Positions 30,395 through 64,000 of a DNA stretch of 64,000 bases are shown here, one piece after another. This stretch comes from Trichosphaerium sp. ATCC 40318 (taxonomy: Eukaryota; Protista; Tubulinea). A program made the translations under genes and the position numbers. Location of the stretch: the NCBI GenBank assembly GCA_038496445.1, contig JALMLS010000541.1, forward strand, positions 124,001 through 188,000, given 5' to 3'. The notes under the pieces were generated by a model. The model was not told the origin of the DNA and searched no databases. It saw only the letters and a list, made by a program, of their open reading frames with translations. Positions within the stretch are counted from its first letter, which is position 1. Each line of letters opens with the position of its first letter.

Positions 30395-30622
30395 TACACT
30401 AGCTCCATGACGGTAATACATATTGTCTTCAATAGTTGGATGTTGTACAATAAAGCCATTCTGAACAGAAACTAGACCATGTTTAGACAACAAGTAGCCC
30501 ACTTAGCTCAATCGGAAGAGCGTTTGGCTTTTGACCAGATGGTAGCGAGATCAAAACTCGCAGTGGGTAGCACACATTAACACTAAATCTTTGGTGTTAG
30601 TGCGCAAAGTGTTCCAAATAAA
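30395..30622 (+). mobile_element. Dispersed tRNA-headed repeat, copy 1 (other copies at about 40160-40420 minus and 63561-63735 plus)
   Basis: Shared leader ...TGTACAATAAAGCCATTCTGAACAGAAACTAGACCATGTTTAGACAACAAGTA (copies 1 and 2) and shared tail TTAACACTA.ATCTTTGGTGTTAGTG.GCAAAGTGTTCCAAATAA (all three). Mobility is inferred; no TSD identified. Confidence 0.6.
30497..30568 (+). tRNA. Atypical tRNA-Lys(TTT)-like sequence, copy 1 (head of a dispersed repeat; probably pseudo-tRNA/SINE-like)
   Basis: Cloverleaf GCCCACT/AGTGGGT, D-stem GCTC/GAGC, anticodon arm TTTGG-CTTTTGA-CCAGA, T-arm GCGAG-ATCAAAA-CTCGC. Confidence 0.75.
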
Positions 30623-30981
30623 TCCAAAAATATTTCAATGAATACGGCAAGCTTGCAACCTTCAAGATACTTACAGCTAATAATTAAGCTGTTGCAATCT
30701 ATCAAGTACTTACTATCACCAATGTTTGTAGCACTACAAAATACTCCTATACTCACAAGTAAACGCTTCGATAAGCAGTTACAATATATAGTACGGTAAG
30801 CTGAGAAATCAAAAGCACAATTTCTATCAAGGGCATTGAACCCATTTTTGTTCCTGCTACGTCATAGCATGACTACTTTCGTTTTTATCATTTTTTGGAC
30901 AACTCAGTTTGACAAAAGAAACTGAACAAAGTTGTTACGAAGTGTGGTTTATTTCCAAATTAGCCGATCCAAAGTTCTGTT

Positions 30982-39657: not shown

Positions 39658-40238
39658 AGAAGCTTCGTAATTGAAAAGTGACTATACAATTTCAATGAAC
39701 TAGACGGCCTCAATGGCAATGCCTCATATTTTTGAGAATGTCATCACGTGGATTAACTTCTTTACGTATTTAAGACTCGTTTTAGATATCTAGCGCACCA
39801 AGCAATAGCTCGTGAATTTTATGCACAGAAAACAAAAACCCAAAAAAATTGTCACAAAGTTGCTGACAATTGAAGTCCAAGAAACGTACCAACAGTTGAA
39901 AGGGAGGTTAGCCAATAACAGATTTTGTTTCTGAGTTTCGTACGCTGACCACGACCTCTATGCTTGGTCAACAGTTACGCCCAAGAAATTCATCTTGTGT
40001 GCACAGTATTTAAATGATGTGCTTTATTCCAGAAATGACAGCTTATCAAAGGCCTTTGAAGTAATTAATTAATCTGCTCCAGTCAACATTATACGTACTA
40101 GCAATGTATGTTGCAAAAGGTGATTTCACGGCGAGGTAATCATTACTATCAAGTTTTCCATTTTCAATGAATTAGGGTTTGTTTGCTTTGTTTTTATTTG
40201 GAACACTTTGCACACTAACACCAAAGATATAGTGTTAA

Positions 40239-40310
40239 GCCCACTGTGAGTTTTGATCTCGCTACCATCTGGTCAAAAGCCAAACGCTCTTCCGATTGAG
40301 CTAAGTGGGC
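40239..40310 (-). tRNA. Atypical tRNA-Lys(TTT)-like sequence, copy 2
   Basis: Reverse complement of the same cloverleaf, with a T-stem mismatch (CTCAC instead of CTCGC). Confidence 0.7.
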
Positions 40311-40314
40311 TACT

Positions 40315-40515
40315 TGTTGTCTAAACATGGTCTAGTTTCTGTTCAGAATGGCTTTATTGTACAATATCCAACTATTACAGACAAGATGTGCATACAGTTA
40401 ATGGAGCTAGTATACAATACACCTTGGAGTATGCTACGAAGGTGTTGAAGAACTAACGGGCGTCCATACCATTAACCTTGAAGGTTGTATGCACATTACA
40501 GACGGTATTACAAAT
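40315..40515 (+). pseudogene. LRR relic of the same family as the F-box/LRR gene at 54854-55999
   Basis: Translates YPTITDK (gene: YATITDK, sharing the 17-mer CAACTATTACAGACAAG) and, after a frameshift, GVEELTGVHTINLEGCMHITDGI (gene: GVRSLAGVHCINLNCCKQLTDGI). Confidence 0.75.
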
Positions 40516-40731: not shown

Positions 40732-41127
40732 ATGGGGTGTTGTACATCAAAGTCAAATTCAGAAAAGAAACTTCTGATAACAAAACCTGAGGAGGCTAGA
40801 AACAAAGAATACATCATTTTTGTCAAAACACTCATTGGTGGGACTATTACAATGACTGTAAATAAGAGGACTACCATTGAAGAGCTTAATAAGATGCTAG
40901 AAGAAAAAACAGGTACGTCTACAAACCGTCACTACAAAGCCGTTGAAAGCGTTGTAACGCGAGTACTTACTGATGCAGGCGTACAACCTCATCAACAGAG
41001 CCTCTTGCAGAGGATGGGAAGTGCTGAAGTAATGTTAGAGGCTAACCACAATAGAACACTTGAAGATTACAATATATTAAAAGAATCTACAATCTCCATG
41101 GTACTACCAATGGGTCGCCGACAGTAG
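40732..41127 (+). CDS. Ubiquitin-like protein with N-terminal myristoylation/palmitoylation motif and no C-terminal Gly-Gly
   Basis: MGCCTS start, IFVKTLIGGTITMTV...TIEELNKMLEEKTG|VQPHQQSL...RTLEDYNILKESTISMVL, ends PMGRRQ. In-frame 66-nt intron at about 40913-40978. Confidence 0.82.
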   Translation: MGCCTSKSNSEKKLLITKPEEARNKEYIIFVKTLIGGTITMTVNKRTTIEELNKMLEEKTGTSTNRHYKAVESVVTRVLTDAGVQPHQQSLLQRMGSAEVMLEANHNRTLEDYNILKESTISMVLPMGRRQ

Positions 41128-54853: not shown

Positions 54854-55999
54854 CTACAGGAAAGGACCCCAATCCCACCACTCTGTACACCACCTTTCTA
54901 TTTTGGGGTAGCACTCAGGTTCATTGACTATAGTAATATGTGAACCTAGCGCAAGAAGACCTTCATCCGTTACTGAAGTATAAGTCACATCGATGGAATG
55001 TAATCCAACAAGTGACTTGATGCCTTTATCTGTTATAGCTTCACAACAACGAAGACTAATAGTGTGAACGCCAGCAAGTGATTTAATTCCTTCATCTGTC
55101 ACTCTTCTACAGCCATTAAGGCATATCTCATGAACGCCCTTCAATGCCATGAGACCATCATCAGATACTGAAGTTCCTCTAAGTTTAATAGTATGAACTC
55201 CAGCAAGTGCCGAAATACCATCTGTCAATTGTTTACAACAATTCAAGTTGATACAATGTACCCCAGCCAATGATCTAACACCCTCATCAGTGACGTTTGT
55301 GCGTTCAAGCTCAATGCTATAGACTCCAGCTAAACACTTTATCCCATTATCTGTAATCTTAGTATAGCTAATGTTGATAGTGTGGACCCCTGCAAGTGCT
55401 TGTAGTGAACTGTCAGTTATACTCGTCCTTTCAAGCCCAATAGTGTGAACGCCAGCCAATGGTATCACACCTCTGTCTGTAACTCTAGTGAAGCTCAAGT
55501 CAATTGTATGTACGCCTGCAAGACTCTGTATACTATCATCAGTAATATTACACCCTGCTAAGTTAACAGTGTGTATACCTGATAATAGAAGAACAGTAGC
55601 GTCTGAAATCCATTTGCAAAAGCTTAAGTTTATCCGCTTAACACCATCTAGAAGCCTCATTTCCTTGTCTGTAATAGTTGCGTAAGGTATAAGATATGTG
55701 GATCGTAGGGTCCCAGGCCATTTAGATATTTTTTCCAACATGATGATGTCCTTAATTTTGATCCTTGTGTAGCCTACAAGACAGCGAACAACATTTGATA
55801 AAAAATGACATGTTTGGGCAACAGCAAAGCGATCTCTGTCGATTAATCTTTTTAAAATCGTGTATGCTATTTCTGATGGGCAGTCTAGTAAGCAGTAAGG
55901 TTGGTCTATAGCCGTGGTAGGTCTATTTAACGTTAATACAGTATTATGTACATTATTAGTTCCCCTATACCTTTTTTTATTTGAATACGGCACTGACAT
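54854..55999 (-). CDS. Intronless F-box/leucine-rich-repeat protein
   Basis: F-box LLDCPSEIAYTILKRL...AQTC followed by about 11 repeats of ITDxGIxxLAGVHTIxL. Confidence 0.9.
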   Translation of the reverse strand: MSVPYSNKKRYRGTNNVHNTVLTLNRPTTAIDQPYCLLDCPSEIAYTILKRLIDRDRFAVAQTCHFLSNVVRCLVGYTRIKIKDIIMLEKISKWPGTLRSTYLIPYATITDKEMRLLDGVKRINLSFCKWISDATVLLLSGIHTVNLAGCNITDDSIQSLAGVHTIDLSFTRVTDRGVIPLAGVHTIGLERTSITDSSLQALAGVHTINISYTKITDNGIKCLAGVYSIELERTNVTDEGVRSLAGVHCINLNCCKQLTDGISALAGVHTIKLRGTSVSDDGLMALKGVHEICLNGCRRVTDEGIKSLAGVHTISLRCCEAITDKGIKSLVGLHSIDVTYTSVTDEGLLALGSHITIVNEPECYPKIERWCTEWWDWGPFL

Positions 56000-56419: not shown

Positions 56420-58247
56420 ATGGCAGAACCTCAAACTTCAGAGGTTAATTTACAACATGTTAACCGTTTGGCCGCTGGTGTACAACATTCAATGGTAATC
56501 GCAGATGATGGCTTTATTTACACGTGGGGACGAAACAATGAGCGCCAATTGGGTAATACGGACGAAAATTCGAGTTCTATCGCCAGACCAATAAAGACAC
56601 TCATAAACATCGTCTGTATCGCTGCTGGATGCTTGCATAGCCTTGCAGTTGATTCAAATGGTATCGTTTATTCGTGGGGCCACAATAAGCATGGCGAATT
56701 AGGTGTCGGTCACTTTTCTTCACCTGTGTCGTCACCAACACGTGTTCCAAATCTCCCACAAATCACTCAAGTCACAACCTATTATGCTAGTATGGCGTTA
56801 TCACAAACAGGTCATATCTACTCTTGGGGAAACAACACAAATCATGGATTGGGTCATTCGTTCAACATGGAGAAAGTAAAGTCACCAAAACGTATTCCAA
56901 GTCTAGATCACGTCAAGAAATTTCAAACTAATCGCTATGTAAGTGGAGCAATTACATCAACAGGTCGTGTCTTTCTTTGGGGGGCAACAGAGGATGAAGC
57001 AGGAGATAGATCATTATTCTTGAATCCAAACACGATTTCACTTGTTCCGAACATCTCAGATGCCACTGATCTTTCCATCGGTGATGAGCATGTACTTGTT
57101 CTCCTCAAGTCAGCACAAGTATTTTCTTTTGGACACAACTATGTTGGGCAGCTTGGGTTGGGTACTGACGACAAGTATGGCCAAGGTATCATCACAGGAC
57201 TCAATAACATCATATCTCTCCATGCTGGTCTTAAGTCAGCATTTGCAATTGATGATGACGGTTGCTTGTTTGGTTGGGGTCAAGGCAAATGGTTTGGTGT
57301 GTTTGAATCAAACAAACCAGTAAAATTACATGGAAAATATCTTGAGTTTTCTAATAAACACTTTCATTACTTGGCAATATCTCATGACTTTCACTTGGTT
57401 ACAGATGGTTTTCACTTTATTGATTGCGACAAATCAGAAGCAAAAAAATTGACATTCGGCAAACGCAAAAAGGTAATTTTATCACTTGATATTAGCTTGT
57501 TGTTTAAGGATTTGTTTGGGTATTCAAAACTGAAATGGACACTTTAGAAGAGATGCGTAAAGAGTTGAAACAAGACCCAAATCGCAAATACTTGTCAATT
57601 GATGGCGGTAGAGAGACCAAGTTTGGCCGAGAATACACCAAGTTTGGAGATGTTCCAGAGCACCTTGATATGATCAAAGATGCCCTTGAAGCCTTTGAAA
57701 TACAACAAAATGAAGAAAACTACTTTAATGTACGTTACAACCAAAAACAAAGAGAAAAGTACATATTCCTTAATGAGTCTTAATAGCCTCACAATGATCC
57801 AAGTGACGGCATTTTATCATCGCCCGACAAATCTAAAATAACTCCATCACATCTTGATGTTCATGTGGTATTACCTGACGAGTCATGGATTGACAAACCC
57901 AATGTTTCAGTTGTTGTTGACACCAAGGTATTTACTTTAAATGCGCTGTGTGGGTTTGGTTCGTATGAAATAACTTTATTTAGCCAACATTCCTTCAACC
58001 ATGTGATACCAAATCAGCTGCTACTTCAACTGCTCCAACACAAATACTCCAAAACCTCGAACCTGATTGGGTACAAGTTTTGGTGAGCTTGGGTATCACA
58101 AGTGAAAGAGCCCAAGAGCTTGGATCATTGATGAATGAGCTTGGTATTCAACTGAATGAAATTGATCAAAATGTGTTGAAAGAACTTGAATTCAGCTTGA
58201 TGGAACGTATCAAGATAACAAAAGCAAAGCGAAATAACCTTTTTTAG
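56420..58247 (+). CDS. RCC1-repeat protein with C-terminal SAM-like domain
   Basis: RCC1 blades (AAGVQHSM, YTWGRNNERQLG, AAGCLHSLA, SWGHNKHGELG). Later exons end WVQVLVSLGI...LMNELGIQLNEIDQNVLKELEFSLMERIKI. Phase of the first intron is not fully resolved. Confidence 0.8.
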
Positions 58248-61576: not shown

Positions 61577-63289
61577 ATGAAAGCATTGACTAATCTCTCC
61601 GAACGGGACTCGCTCCTATTGAACGCTTGCATTGCAGTAGTGCTTTTACCGATAGCTATTGGAGGAGCTGTAGCTCTTTCAAGCATCCGCGAACCTCAAG
61701 GCCCGGCTTTTGGTGTTTCAGTGGTATGTTTTGTTTAAACATGTTCCTATCGATACCAAGCGCTCTATAGGTTGCTTATTAAGCGTCGTTTAATTATTTT
61801 GATGATCACAAATTTATTTTGGAATAGGTTTTGTTTCTGGCAATCTTAGCAACTCTTTTGGGCGGAGGGATGTTCATGGCTCTCGTTTCATTAGGACAGG
61901 TGACAAAGAAACACCTTCATGTAGTATTTTTCTTCGGAGCGCTTTTACTAGCCATAACGACTATGATAATGCTTGGGTGGCTAATGGGCTCCTTCACAAG
62001 AACGTATTGGCTGAGTACTTTTGAAGGTAAGTGAAAAACGCGAAAAAACCAGAATTTTTGTTTTTTCGTTTTAGCACGTGCAGCAAATCATGATCTTATT
62101 TTTTGGTTGTAGGATCAGTAATAGTGGATGACGTAATCAAAAACCAAATACAGAATAACGAAAAGTTCAAGACAGGGTTTGATTATACGTTTGAGACGCC
62201 TAGTGAAATTGTCACTAACCCAACATTGTACGTACATCTTGACATTATCAAGCTGTTTCAACAAGGCGGTAATATTACTGTTGTGGATTTACATCAGTAA
62301 CAACATAATTCTTCTAATGGACAAAGCTGTAACAGTGAAGGCAATGTAGTGTTTTTTCAACTCTGAAATTTTAGTGTATTGTAGTTTTTTCTTAAAACTT
62401 GCATAGTTGGGGATACAGCTCAACATTTAGATGTTCCTCTGGGAAAACAAGAAGGTGTACAACAAGATTGCATTGCATGGCTCCAGTGACATTGAATCCA
62501 GGAACATCATTTATGAATAACACTGTACATACCGTTACATAGTGTGTCATGCTTAATAGCTTTTTAGGAGCTTGTTGGATTTTTTGTAACTTGTGAGATT
62601 ATACTTCCAGGTTCTTTGACAGCTAATAACAACACATGTTTTAAACACAAGGATGACGTATGTATACAAAAATGGTTTGATGGCAATACAGACAGCACCA
62701 GGCTTTTTGGTAGTTCGTCATTGATACGACCAACAAGATTACTAGACAGCACTGAAGAGGTACAAACTCTTTTGATACAAATATTACAGTTTTCATATTG
62801 TTTATGCTCGTTCTAAACCAATTCAACACCTTTCTCTTTAATGCCTCTGCTAATGTTTTTACTAAGGCTTTAAGTCATATTAAGAGAATTAAAGGAATCA
62901 CGGTGAGCAAGAACCATGTTCTTTTGTTCAATCAAGATAGTGAAAGTATTGTGAAGAAACATAAAATTACTGCTATTGTGTTTATTACTGTAAGTACAAC
63001 TGTTTTTACATTTGGAAGCTGTTAGGTCTATAATCTTTTTCAACATTGTTGACATTTTGCCTAGGTTTTTTGTATCTTGTATGTGGCAGTTATAGGTGTA
63101 TGTCTTTTTTATAATCATCCAGAGATATCTAGGAAGATTGTTTCCAAATACGGATGTACACCTGCCTCTTTTGGTCTTCTTGGAGGTCCCGAAAATAACG
63201 TTGTGGCCACCCCATCTGATAACCCTTCATCTACTTCAGATGATAAAAGCGTGTCGATACAAATGGATAGTCCATACGTTGAAAACTGA
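61577..63289 (+). pseudogene. Tetraspanin-like four-TM gene with enlarged loop; CCG exon disrupted
   Basis: Three N-terminal TMs, long loop, fourth TM (ITAIVFITVFCILYVAVIGVCLFY) and tail. YYCCGF (CCG codons at 62279-62287) is preceded by an in-frame TAA (62270-62272) and followed by a frameshift. Confidence 0.6.
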
Positions 63290-63574
63290 AACTATGTAGA
63301 TAAGACAAATTGTACAAAAAAAAATAAAACACAAAATTACCAAAGATCAGATTGTGAAAAAGAACAGTCCTCCATTGAATATGGAGTATGCTCTATGAAT
63401 TGTTTACTTCAAGTCCACTGGATGCTGCTTAGAAAGAGGCCATCAAATGCAGCATTTGTATGTACAATGTTTAGACATCAAGTAGCTAATGTACATAACA
63501 AGACTACGAGTAGTAGAAAATGTTTCTGTAAATACAATACCAGGTTGAAACACTTTACCTGTAGACAACAAGTA

Positions 63575-63646
63575 GCCCACTTAGCTCAATCGGAAGAGCG
63601 TTTGGCTTTTGACCAGATGGTAGCGAGATCAAAACTCGCAGTGGGC
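63575..63646 (+). tRNA. Atypical tRNA-Lys(TTT)-like sequence, copy 3
   Basis: Same cloverleaf with a fully paired acceptor stem GCCCACT/AGTGGGC, followed by the shared hairpin tail. Confidence 0.75.
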
Positions 63647-64000
63647 TTAACACTATATCTTTGGTGTTAGTGTGCAAAGTGTTCCAAATAATTTCGAAAC
63701 AACCAACCTGAATTCATTGAATATGGAAAACTTATGAGTGCTCTATGTTAGCCAACAGATCATCTTGTAATCAATTACTTCAATCATTGAAAAATACCGA
63801 CTCTAAATGAAGGTAAAAACTGAACTATTGAAACCACAACAAACTTGTTAGAACCAACTTTGTTTATTCATAACTGTTGCGAATGGAGCCCTTATTCAAC
63901 AACTTGATATTCTATAAAACAAACTCGTAATACTATAGCGAGCTTAATTGAAGACGTACATGCGCCAAAAGAGAAGCAGACAAAAAGGTACTGCTGTCAC

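Follow-up and report, generated by a model that had tools for sequence, protein, structure and literature searches.

Clustered variant tRNA-Lys(UUU) genes with G37 and a putative purine-purine elbow in the amoeba Trichosphaerium sp. ATCC 40318

The window considered here is a 64,000-nucleotide stretch of DNA from the amoeba Trichosphaerium sp. ATCC 40318, i.e., positions 124001 to 188000 of contig JALMLS010000541.1 (C76), within a eukaryotic assembly (G000) of 70 Mb and 642 contigs. It holds three copies of an atypical tRNA-Lys(UUU) gene, termed here copies A, B and C. Judging from their sequences, and with moderate confidence, these copies may be viewed as members of a locally amplified, constrained gene family for a virus-related tRNA-Lys(UUU) isodecoder, one which would be free of N6-threonylcarbamoyladenosine (t6A) and would possess an elbow based upon purine-purine pairs. 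The window itself is ~37% GC, with long open reading frames (ORFs) sparse, as would be expected of a genome rich in introns.

Among tRNAs that depend on t6A at position 37 (t6A37) for decoding, tRNA-Lys(UUU) is the textbook example. A conserved, multi-copy tRNA-Lys with G37, found in a eukaryote and with a giant-virus relative, suggests natural t6A-independent lysine decoding, and the viral kinship of this variant suggests as well some movement of tRNA genes from giant virus to host or the reverse. If expressed and charged, the variant would provide a handle on the role of its A15/A48-A54/A58 elbow, along with G37, in an elongator tRNA, and also on the question of whether tRNA-Lys is contested between virus and host among eukaryotes in the way that it is between phages and bacteria.

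The window copies and their genomic setting

tRNA genes were called using ARAGORN along with Rfam model RF00005 (gathering score 29 bits), and both call tRNA-Lys(UUU) at three sites in the window, thereby bearing out the three tRNA-Lys(TTT) cloverleafs that a first-pass annotation of this DNA had described. Copy A is found at 30497..30569 (+; 60.0 bits), copy B at 40238..40310 (-; 54.3 bits, with a mismatch flagged), and copy C at 63575..63647 (+; 60.4 bits). In each the anticodon loop is CTTTTGA, i.e., with G37, and the T-loop is ATCAAAA, i.e., with A54 and A60, features that had been singled out as unusual, and which are. Genome-wide there are eight such copies, all of them called tRNA-Lys(UUU) by ARAGORN, all with the UUU anticodon, and all with A54/A60 instead of the canonical T54 and pyrimidine 60. 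Seven of the eight have U73, which is also the discriminator of the organism's canonical gene.

Copy C, with its U73 and T-loop ATCAAAA, is the intact reference form, with a conserved 5' leader at 63561..63574 (+) and a 3' trailer at 63648..63747 (+). Copy A is preceded by a CAA-rich leader of the GTTTAGACAACAAGTA type (30483..30496, +), which is common to six of the eight copies and is like the CAA-rich 5' flanks of other host tRNA genes. It displays C72>T, with a G1-U72 wobble pair, and has A73; positions 72 and 73 are separated by an insertion of 8 nt (30569-30576), which parts the body from its usual trailer. That trailer, as recognized by alignment of copies, extends over 30577..30670 (+) without a run of four T residues (T4 run), and includes a weak hairpin (30578-30599, +) followed by a highly conserved block, GCAAAGTGTTCCAAATAAA (30604-30622, +), beyond which conservation is looser, to approximately +100. 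Copy B possesses G64>A, resulting in a C-A mismatch in the T stem. Its trailer is at 40138..40237 (-) and its 5' flank, at 40311..40430 (-), is homologous to that of copy A over ~120 nt at ~87-89% identity. This ~120 nt of upstream homology is found with copies A and B only; common to all three copies are ~14 nt upstream and ~45-100 nt downstream, so that homology does run into both flanks, as had been claimed. The 3' hairpin that had been claimed as well stands only in part. It is present in some copies, though as a conserved hairpin it is ruled out by its missing covariation and weak energy (-2.6 kcal/mol). The T4 run, as first observed, is indeed missing just downstream, with none found within 120-600 nt of any copy.

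The copies were counted by means of a genome-wide search with a 140-nt unit, and an independent pattern search returns the same eight loci. All are located on C76, between 72,989 and 211,904, that is, within 140 kb, and the family consequently is not the dispersed one that it was initially taken to be. The unit that is repeated in common has definable ends, spanning from approximately -14/-19 to approximately +100. Longer flanks, based on a reading of ~124 kb of C76, are shared within only three pairs or groups of copies: those at 154497 (copy A) and 164310 (copy B), with the upstream ~120 nt in common; those at 193687 and 210479, with ~1.15 kb at 87.5% identity; and those at 205509 and 211895, with ~4-4.6 kb at 78% identity. 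The variant genes, in other words, are clustered locally, the cluster having been built up through segmental duplication. Target-site duplications (TSDs), which the first-pass annotation had suggested seeking at copy ends, are not consistently present as flanking direct repeats, with seven of the eight copies doing no better than shuffles. The trailer alone, searched genome-wide, matches nothing except the tRNA-linked copies, and there thus is no long interspersed nuclear element (LINE) in this genome with which the tail is shared.

Upstream of copy C is a 1.6-kb segment (61724-63328) for which there are two inverted paralogues on contig C25, at 93601-95123 (-) and 97672-99210 (+), with ~80% identity. 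That homology stops 246 nt short of the copy C tRNA, and the paralogues are therefore uninformative as an empty site.

The variant is not the organism's standard tRNA-Lys(UUU), a possibility that is ruled out by the existence of at least five canonical genes on other contigs (C36, C104 and C389). These possess A37, a TTCGA T-loop and U73, score 75.9 bits, and are followed 2 nt past the gene by a T5 run. Comparison with these genes, to which the variant is identical at 54 of 73 positions, bears out its initial description as atypical. The genome also has more A37 tRNA-Lys(UUU) families along with nine tRNA-Lys(CUU) genes, and certain odd traits of the variant are less odd in this genome, i.e., U73, A54/A60 and G37 all occur elsewhere within it.

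Several of these other genes can be described individually. The nine tRNA-Lys(CUU) loci (C1:793774, C142, C216, C317, C358; L059-L067) have an A54/A60 T-loop, ATCGAGA, together with a normal G15/C48 and an immediate T6 terminator. A single-copy tRNA-Ile(UAU) on C31 (255866-255940, -; L009:1494-1568) has G37, in the loop CTTATGA, and a normal T9 terminator; within this genome, it is to this gene that the variant is most closely related (53-54 of 73 positions). On metagenome contig L127, a G37 tRNA-Ile(UAU) adjoins a G37 tRNA-Lys(UUU). Beside the tRNA-Lys(CUU) genes, on these same contigs and loci (C1, C142, C216, C317, C358; L059-L067), is a second tRNA-Lys(UUU) family, with acceptor GCCTATG.., A37, a normal T-loop and a D-loop that is one or two bases longer. 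Six distinct loci of this second family are without a T4 run for 100-450 nt, and five of those six display the trailer AACTTTATTATTACAC, or a near variant of it, as well as a leader ending in ACATCAA or CCATCAA. Lastly, on C104 there are two canonical-type tRNA-Lys(UUU) anticodon arms (183626-183654, +, and 184964-184992, -) which follow an altered D arm, GCTCAGTCGACTGAGC.

Constraint, elbow and viral relatives

Mean pairwise identity among the eight copies is 97.5% over the tRNA body. Upstream it is 72% over -19..-1, with sequence farther out essentially unalignable (60% or less), and over the trailer it is 85% at +1..+23, 92% at +24..+45 and 60% at +46..+100. The homologous flanks of duplicated pairs, for their part, are 78-88% identical over 1.1-4.6 kb, with the tRNA differing at ~2 positions. 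The preserved stems are not due to youth, because divergence has brought the flanks down to 78-88% identity, with the tRNA remaining at ~97.5%. Simple youth, which had been entertained as a cause of those stems, thus is excluded, and selection, gene conversion or both must be acting on the tRNA bodies. Some gene conversion is suggested by position 57, where A versus G follows physical position rather than flank kinship: A57 is seen at 154-194 kb, whereas G57 is seen both at 73 kb and at 205-212 kb, and 193687 and 210479, though homologous in their flanks, have different bases there. Five of the eight copies, including copy C, are clean cloverleafs, and the copy set overall looks like the product of birth-and-death evolution.

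The A box of the variant, TAGCTCAATCGG, is intact, while its B box, GATCRAAAC, is, by sequence resemblance, an initiator-type one. Its leader, ACAACAAGTA, is CAA-rich in the manner of the 5' flanks at other host tRNA genes, whereas the leaders of the viral copies discussed below are AT-rich. Within the trailer, the 92%-conserved +24..+45 block holds GTTCCAAAT from +34. An external B box (GTTCRAnYC) lies ~41 bp downstream of 66% of the tRNA genes in Dictyostelium (PMC3159450), and by analogy the block may represent an external-B-box-like promoter element, a simpler reading of it and, at this point, a lead. Scanning the viral collection with a 16-nt trailer motif returned mostly chance matches.

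At positions 36 to 38 all eight copies have U36-G37-A38 and therefore lack the 36-UAA-38 determinant of t6A37. As t6A synthesis strictly needs 36-UAA-38 (PMC13276492), and G37 here follows U36, the variant cannot carry t6A37. In human mitochondrial tRNA-Ile, the mutation m.4295A>G similarly converts A37 to G in a decoder of ANN codons, leading to TRMT5-made 1-methylguanosine (m1G37; PMC7826259). By this analogy, m1G37 probably is the state of position 37 in the variant as well.

Relatives of the variant were sought by pattern scans of a viral collection, of metagenome contigs, and of one genome per species of 185,579 prokaryotes. One pattern, employed with the viral collection and the metagenome contigs, was a Lys-type D arm plus CTTTTGA, with the T-loop left free at position 54. 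This G37 Lys pattern is present on seven viral contigs, five of them giant-virus metagenome-assembled genomes (GVMAGs), and on at least 120 metagenome contigs. The corresponding A37 pattern is found on at least 116 contigs of the viral collection (nine GVMAGs among the 80 listed), and G37 Lys tRNAs thus are a small minority in that collection, one that is concentrated in viruses of eukaryotes. On 94 scan-returned contigs, which are contigs selected for G37 Lys, ARAGORN finds A37 kept in tRNAs for Arg, Asn, Ile-GAU, Ser, most Thr and Met (one of which has T37), and finds G37 in Lys(UUU), Lys(CUU), one Ile(UAU) and one Thr(UGU).

Among the matches listed, with nearer ones possibly existing, the closest relative of the variant is a tRNA on metagenome contig L151 (MDTB01235510.1, 32% GC), which is identical at 64 of 73 positions. 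The nine differences are accounted for by three compensated stem pairs (six positions), a single change of U-G to C-G, and two positions that are unpaired, with the D arm, variable loop, T arm, G37, U73 and every loop base identical. This tRNA is part of an array (L151:4100-5320, -) in which one tRNA-Lys(UUU) is present as A37 and G37 twins, together with a G37 tRNA-Lys(CUU) and a tRNA-like gene that contains a long insert. After every tRNA of the array is a 25-nt motif, GTCGTTGGGTCAGACGTTAAATGAC, that recurs in two GVMAG contigs, and beside the array is a 489-aa ORF whose nearest protein-atlas clusters are all Nucleocytoviricota. On these two grounds L151 is taken to be giant-virus DNA. A search of the viral collection for relatives of the 489-aa ORF found none.

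The tRNA type, to go by these sequences, probably has been exchanged between giant viruses and the amoeba's lineage, in either direction, and now is resident and host-adapted. Residency and adaptation are suggested by a lack of viral genes nearby, by copies that are solitary, and by the host-like, CAA-rich leader. As to viral genes, tblastx of ten giant-virus contigs versus the ~124 kb of C76 matches tRNAs only. A search of the genome for the capsid of nucleocytoplasmic large DNA viruses (NCLDVs; PF04451) gave no signal, though control genomes were silent also, so that this result carries little weight.

Scans employing the D arm only, with a Lys anticodon, extend the type beyond G37. All five viral matches (GVMAG contig L206, actinophages and other viral contigs) have A54 loops, and of just 11 matches among the 185,579 prokaryotic genomes, 10 have an A54 T-loop. 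The prokaryotic matches (L210-L220) are from Pseudoclavibacter spp., other Actinomycetes, and one Parcubacteria MAG. A gap-free alignment (A2) of 20 distinct sequences has 99.3% of its cells paired, with 14 of 21 pairs changed on both sides; this covariation is matched by none of 500 shuffles, and no slide comes near. Invariant within the loops are A15, A20, A21, A48, A54, U55, C56 and A58/59, with A60 mostly so. Of these, A20 is found in initiators as well, as in the yeast initiator structure. The variant, to judge by sequence, belongs to a rare tRNA-Lys(UUU) type (A15, A20, A48, A54, A58, A60) of giant viruses, actinophages and a few bacteria, and the initiator-like T-loop is one half of a coherent alternative elbow rather than a product of decay.

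A phage tRNA-Asn(GUU) found on IMG/VR contigs L221-L226 (46-52% GC) has the D-loop of the lysine type, AATCGGAA or AATTGGAA, along with the lysine type's variable loop, GGTA, and T arm, GCGAG-ATCGAAA-CTCGC. The purine-purine elbow therefore is not limited to lysine tRNAs. A loose variable-loop/T-loop pattern, when scanned for in the amoeba genome, gave mostly chance matches.

The variant's proposed history and biology can be sketched as follows. Eight copies would have arisen by local duplication within one chromosome region, and the 73-nt tRNA along with a short functional flank (~-14 to +45) would have been kept by purifying selection and/or gene conversion as the rest diverged. RNA polymerase III (Pol III) would transcribe these genes from the intact A box and initiator-like B box, behind the host-type CAA-rich leader. 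As oligo-T is missing, the 3' end is proposed to be made by RNase Z cleavage after U73, with CCA then added. Lysyl-tRNA synthetase presumably would charge the product via its UUU anticodon and U73. In the elbow, the purine-purine pairs A15/A48 and A54/A58, with A20 and A60, would replace G15/C48 and T54/A58, while G37 would mean no t6A and probably m1G37 instead, as made by Trm5. Underlying the whole would be an exchange of this tRNA type between giant viruses and the lineage of this amoeba.

Alternative readings

Several observations weigh against a functional isodecoder. Three of the eight copies have changes which are likely to be damaging: a D-stem double mutation, GAGC>GGGG, at 211895, along with the T-stem C-A mismatch of copy B (164310) and the C72>T plus 8-nt insertion before the trailer of copy A (154497). 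The first T4 run is encountered only at +120 to +600 of the variant copies, versus within 10 nt at 30 of 37 other tRNA loci of the genome. T4-less tRNA genes nonetheless are not unique to the cluster, since the second tRNA-Lys(UUU) family also lacks T4 runs and has its own conserved trailer. The G37 form, in addition, might decode poorly, with tRNA-Lys(UUU) decoding leaning heavily on t6A37, and the mitochondrial A37G mutant is defective (PMC7826259). Gene conversion alone, moreover, could keep tRNA bodies alike in the absence of any function.

This last point leads to the main rival, considered here as unlikely, which is that the genes are non-functional relics. That is, they would have come in with DNA of a giant virus, or have originated as a stray duplicate, and then been locally duplicated, homogenized by conversion, and allowed slowly to decay. 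Stem or 3'-end lesions in three of the eight copies would be expected of such relics, as would the missing Pol III terminator, the hint of conversion found in the A57/G57 pattern, and a closest relative, among the matches listed, that is viral. Conversion without selection, however, should spread lesions too, yet five perfect cloverleafs persist despite 12-22% flank divergence. Nor would conversion tracts alone explain the match of the leader to host tRNA 5' flanks, and, as for arrival with viral DNA, no viral protein genes are near, with the tblastx comparison sharing tRNAs only and, for what the equally silent controls allow, no NCLDV capsid found. Should the genes in fact be silent, then the cluster would still neatly illustrate how tRNA genes are born and lost, with gene conversion at work among them.

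A different function from ordinary decoding is quite unlikely, though worth setting out: The variant could be a specialised tRNA, kept because its t6A-free loop and its elbow resist attack on the normal tRNA-Lys(UUU), such as by an anticodon nuclease or toxin during virus-host conflict. Phage tRNAs reportedly evade anticodon nucleases by means of anticodon-loop changes, with tRNA-Lys(UUU) being a classic target, i.e., of PrrC (PMC10264068). Consistent with conflict are the share of giant-virus MAGs among G37 viral matches (five of seven, versus nine of the 80 A37 matches listed) and the presence on L151 of A37 and G37 twins as well as a G37 Lys(CUU), with other ANN decoders on the scan-returned contigs mostly A37. 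No nuclease or toxin has been identified, however, and the ordinary tRNA-Ile(UAU) of this genome is also G37, with a normal terminator, so that G37 following U36 may be merely tolerated.

Neighbouring genes supply little toward such a conflict. There is no conserved protein neighbour, with neighbours instead differing between copies. TPR/Sel1 repeat exons are head to head with just two of the eight copies, namely the duplicate pair 205509/211895 (C76 ~207.2-214.1 kb). Those TPR and Sel1 exons of a duplicated gene, as recognized by Pfam, are at L042:4887-6090 (+) and L041:9206-9723 (+), and no HEPN domain was detected by Pfam on the gene's upstream exon pieces, which were searched exon by exon and never joined. 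ORFs adjoining the three window copies provide one ubiquitin-like match only, that of a 131-aa ORF with a ubiquitin-like domain at 40732-41127 (+), ~420 nt upstream of copy B. Elsewhere in the window are two head-to-head intronless ORFs, of 381 aa with LRR_6 repeats (54854-55999, -) and of 375 aa with RCC1 repeats (56420-57547, +).

The conflict idea can be broadened, in a form that is similarly improbable, such that t6A-free, G37, purine-elbow Lys tRNAs form a distinct functional class that is kept by giant viruses as well as by one amoeba or more. The cluster would then be a domesticated or shared virus-type version, one keeping up AAA/AAG decoding while virus-host conflict brings an attack on the normal tRNA-Lys(UUU) or on the pathway for its t6A/wobble modification. 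If true, this would be a eukaryotic parallel to the phage tRNAs that escape anticodon nucleases.

Very unlikely is that each tRNA is a processing module of a longer transcript, cut by RNase P and RNase Z to release or define a downstream RNA, as with tRNA-snoRNA, tRNA-miRNA or mascRNA-type arrangements. A terminator missing for more than 120 nt would accord with such a transcript, as too would a trailer that is 92% conserved at +24..+45 and more loosely to +100. The trailer nevertheless is without conserved secondary structure and without an Rfam match, homology is over by approximately +100, with contexts beyond that point differing, and the conserved block sits where the external B box of Dictyostelium lies, ~41 bp downstream (PMC3159450), making promoter function the simpler reading. 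Full lysine identity features, furthermore, have been kept, and these would be needless for a mere processing handle. A tRNA-like non-coding RNA family, as the first-pass annotation had alternatively offered, is a vaguer possibility, and an actual tRNA is simpler.

A tRNA-derived short interspersed nuclear element (SINE) or other retroposed element, i.e., a tRNA head with internal Pol III promoter, body and tail, copied through RNA, may be dismissed as exceedingly improbable, for while the head does have A and B boxes, no terminator directly follows it, and a ~190-nt unit (-14 to +100) is found in four or more different sequence settings, there are eight copies only in 70 Mb, all clustered within 140 kb of one contig, with no consistent TSDs, no poly(A) or simple-repeat tail, no LINE partner, no tail-only copies or other tail matches in the genome, and a head that is conserved far above its flanks and which covaries with real tRNAs elsewhere. 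The SINE-like element that was first proposed thus fails, and the cluster should be annotated as variant tRNA genes in preference to a repeat element. Service as a retroelement primer tRNA is also ruled out, the complement of the 3' end plus CCA being missing genome-wide save for the genes themselves and chance near-matches.

Comparison with known systems

The isodecoder reading can be placed alongside a number of better-known systems. With tRNA-derived SINEs the variant family has in common a head that is related to tRNA and contains internal promoter boxes, as well as a repeated unit extending past the tRNA. It differs in not being dispersed, in its low copy number, in its lack of TSDs, in a tail that is not shared, and in a head which is under tRNA-like constraint. 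With the canonical tRNA-Lys(UUU) of the same genome it has in common the anticodon, a 7-nt loop with C32 and A38, U73, a length of 73 nt, no intron, and a CAA-rich 5' flank. The canonical gene differs in possessing A37, G15/C48, T54 and pyrimidine 60, in its score (75.9 versus 60 bits), and in its T5 terminator.

Giant-virus tRNA-Lys(UUU) arrays are alike in the tRNA itself, with that of L151 identical at 64 of 73 positions, stem changes being compensated, and that of GVMAG contig L206 at 58 of 73, with the same elbow. The viral genes, however, are closely packed into arrays, their leaders are AT-rich, and the trailer motif of 25 nt is one of their own, whereas each amoeba copy stands by itself, kilobases from the next, between a host-like leader and a different trailer, with no viral protein genes beside it. 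The mitochondrial m.4295A>G tRNA-Ile, in which m1G37 replaces t6A37, resembles the variant as an ANN-decoding tRNA with G37 instead of A37. That change, though, is a pathogenic, function-impairing point mutation, whereas here G37 is the fixed state, seen in each of the eight copies and also in the viral homologue.

In terms of the elbow, eukaryotic tRNA-Ala(AGC) displays the co-occurrence of R15/A48, A54/A58 and purine 60, and A54/A58 marks the eukaryotic initiator (Westhof 2020, PMC7566577). The likeness to the variant of initiator tRNA-Met and tRNA-Ala(AGC) is in A54/A58 with R15/A48 and purine 60; the difference is that here the elbow would be that of a lysine elongator. These pairs, in addition, are absent from bacterial and archaeal tRNA-Ala (PMC7566577), whereas here they are found in Lys and Asn tRNAs of phages and in a few bacteria.

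Phages provide the remaining comparisons. The nuclease-evading phage tRNAs (van den Berg et al. 2023, PMC10264068) are, like the variant, virus-associated tRNAs which differ from those of the host. Similarly, the actinophage tRNA-Lys(UUU) of tRNA-dependent lysogeny (PMC10865867) is akin in that the actinophage tRNA-Lys genes recovered here have the same D arm and the A54 T-loop. These phage systems differ from what is described here in being bacterial and experimentally supported, with the actinophage copies keeping A37, whereas the variant genes, for which no nuclease has been identified, have G37 and reside in a eukaryotic chromosome.

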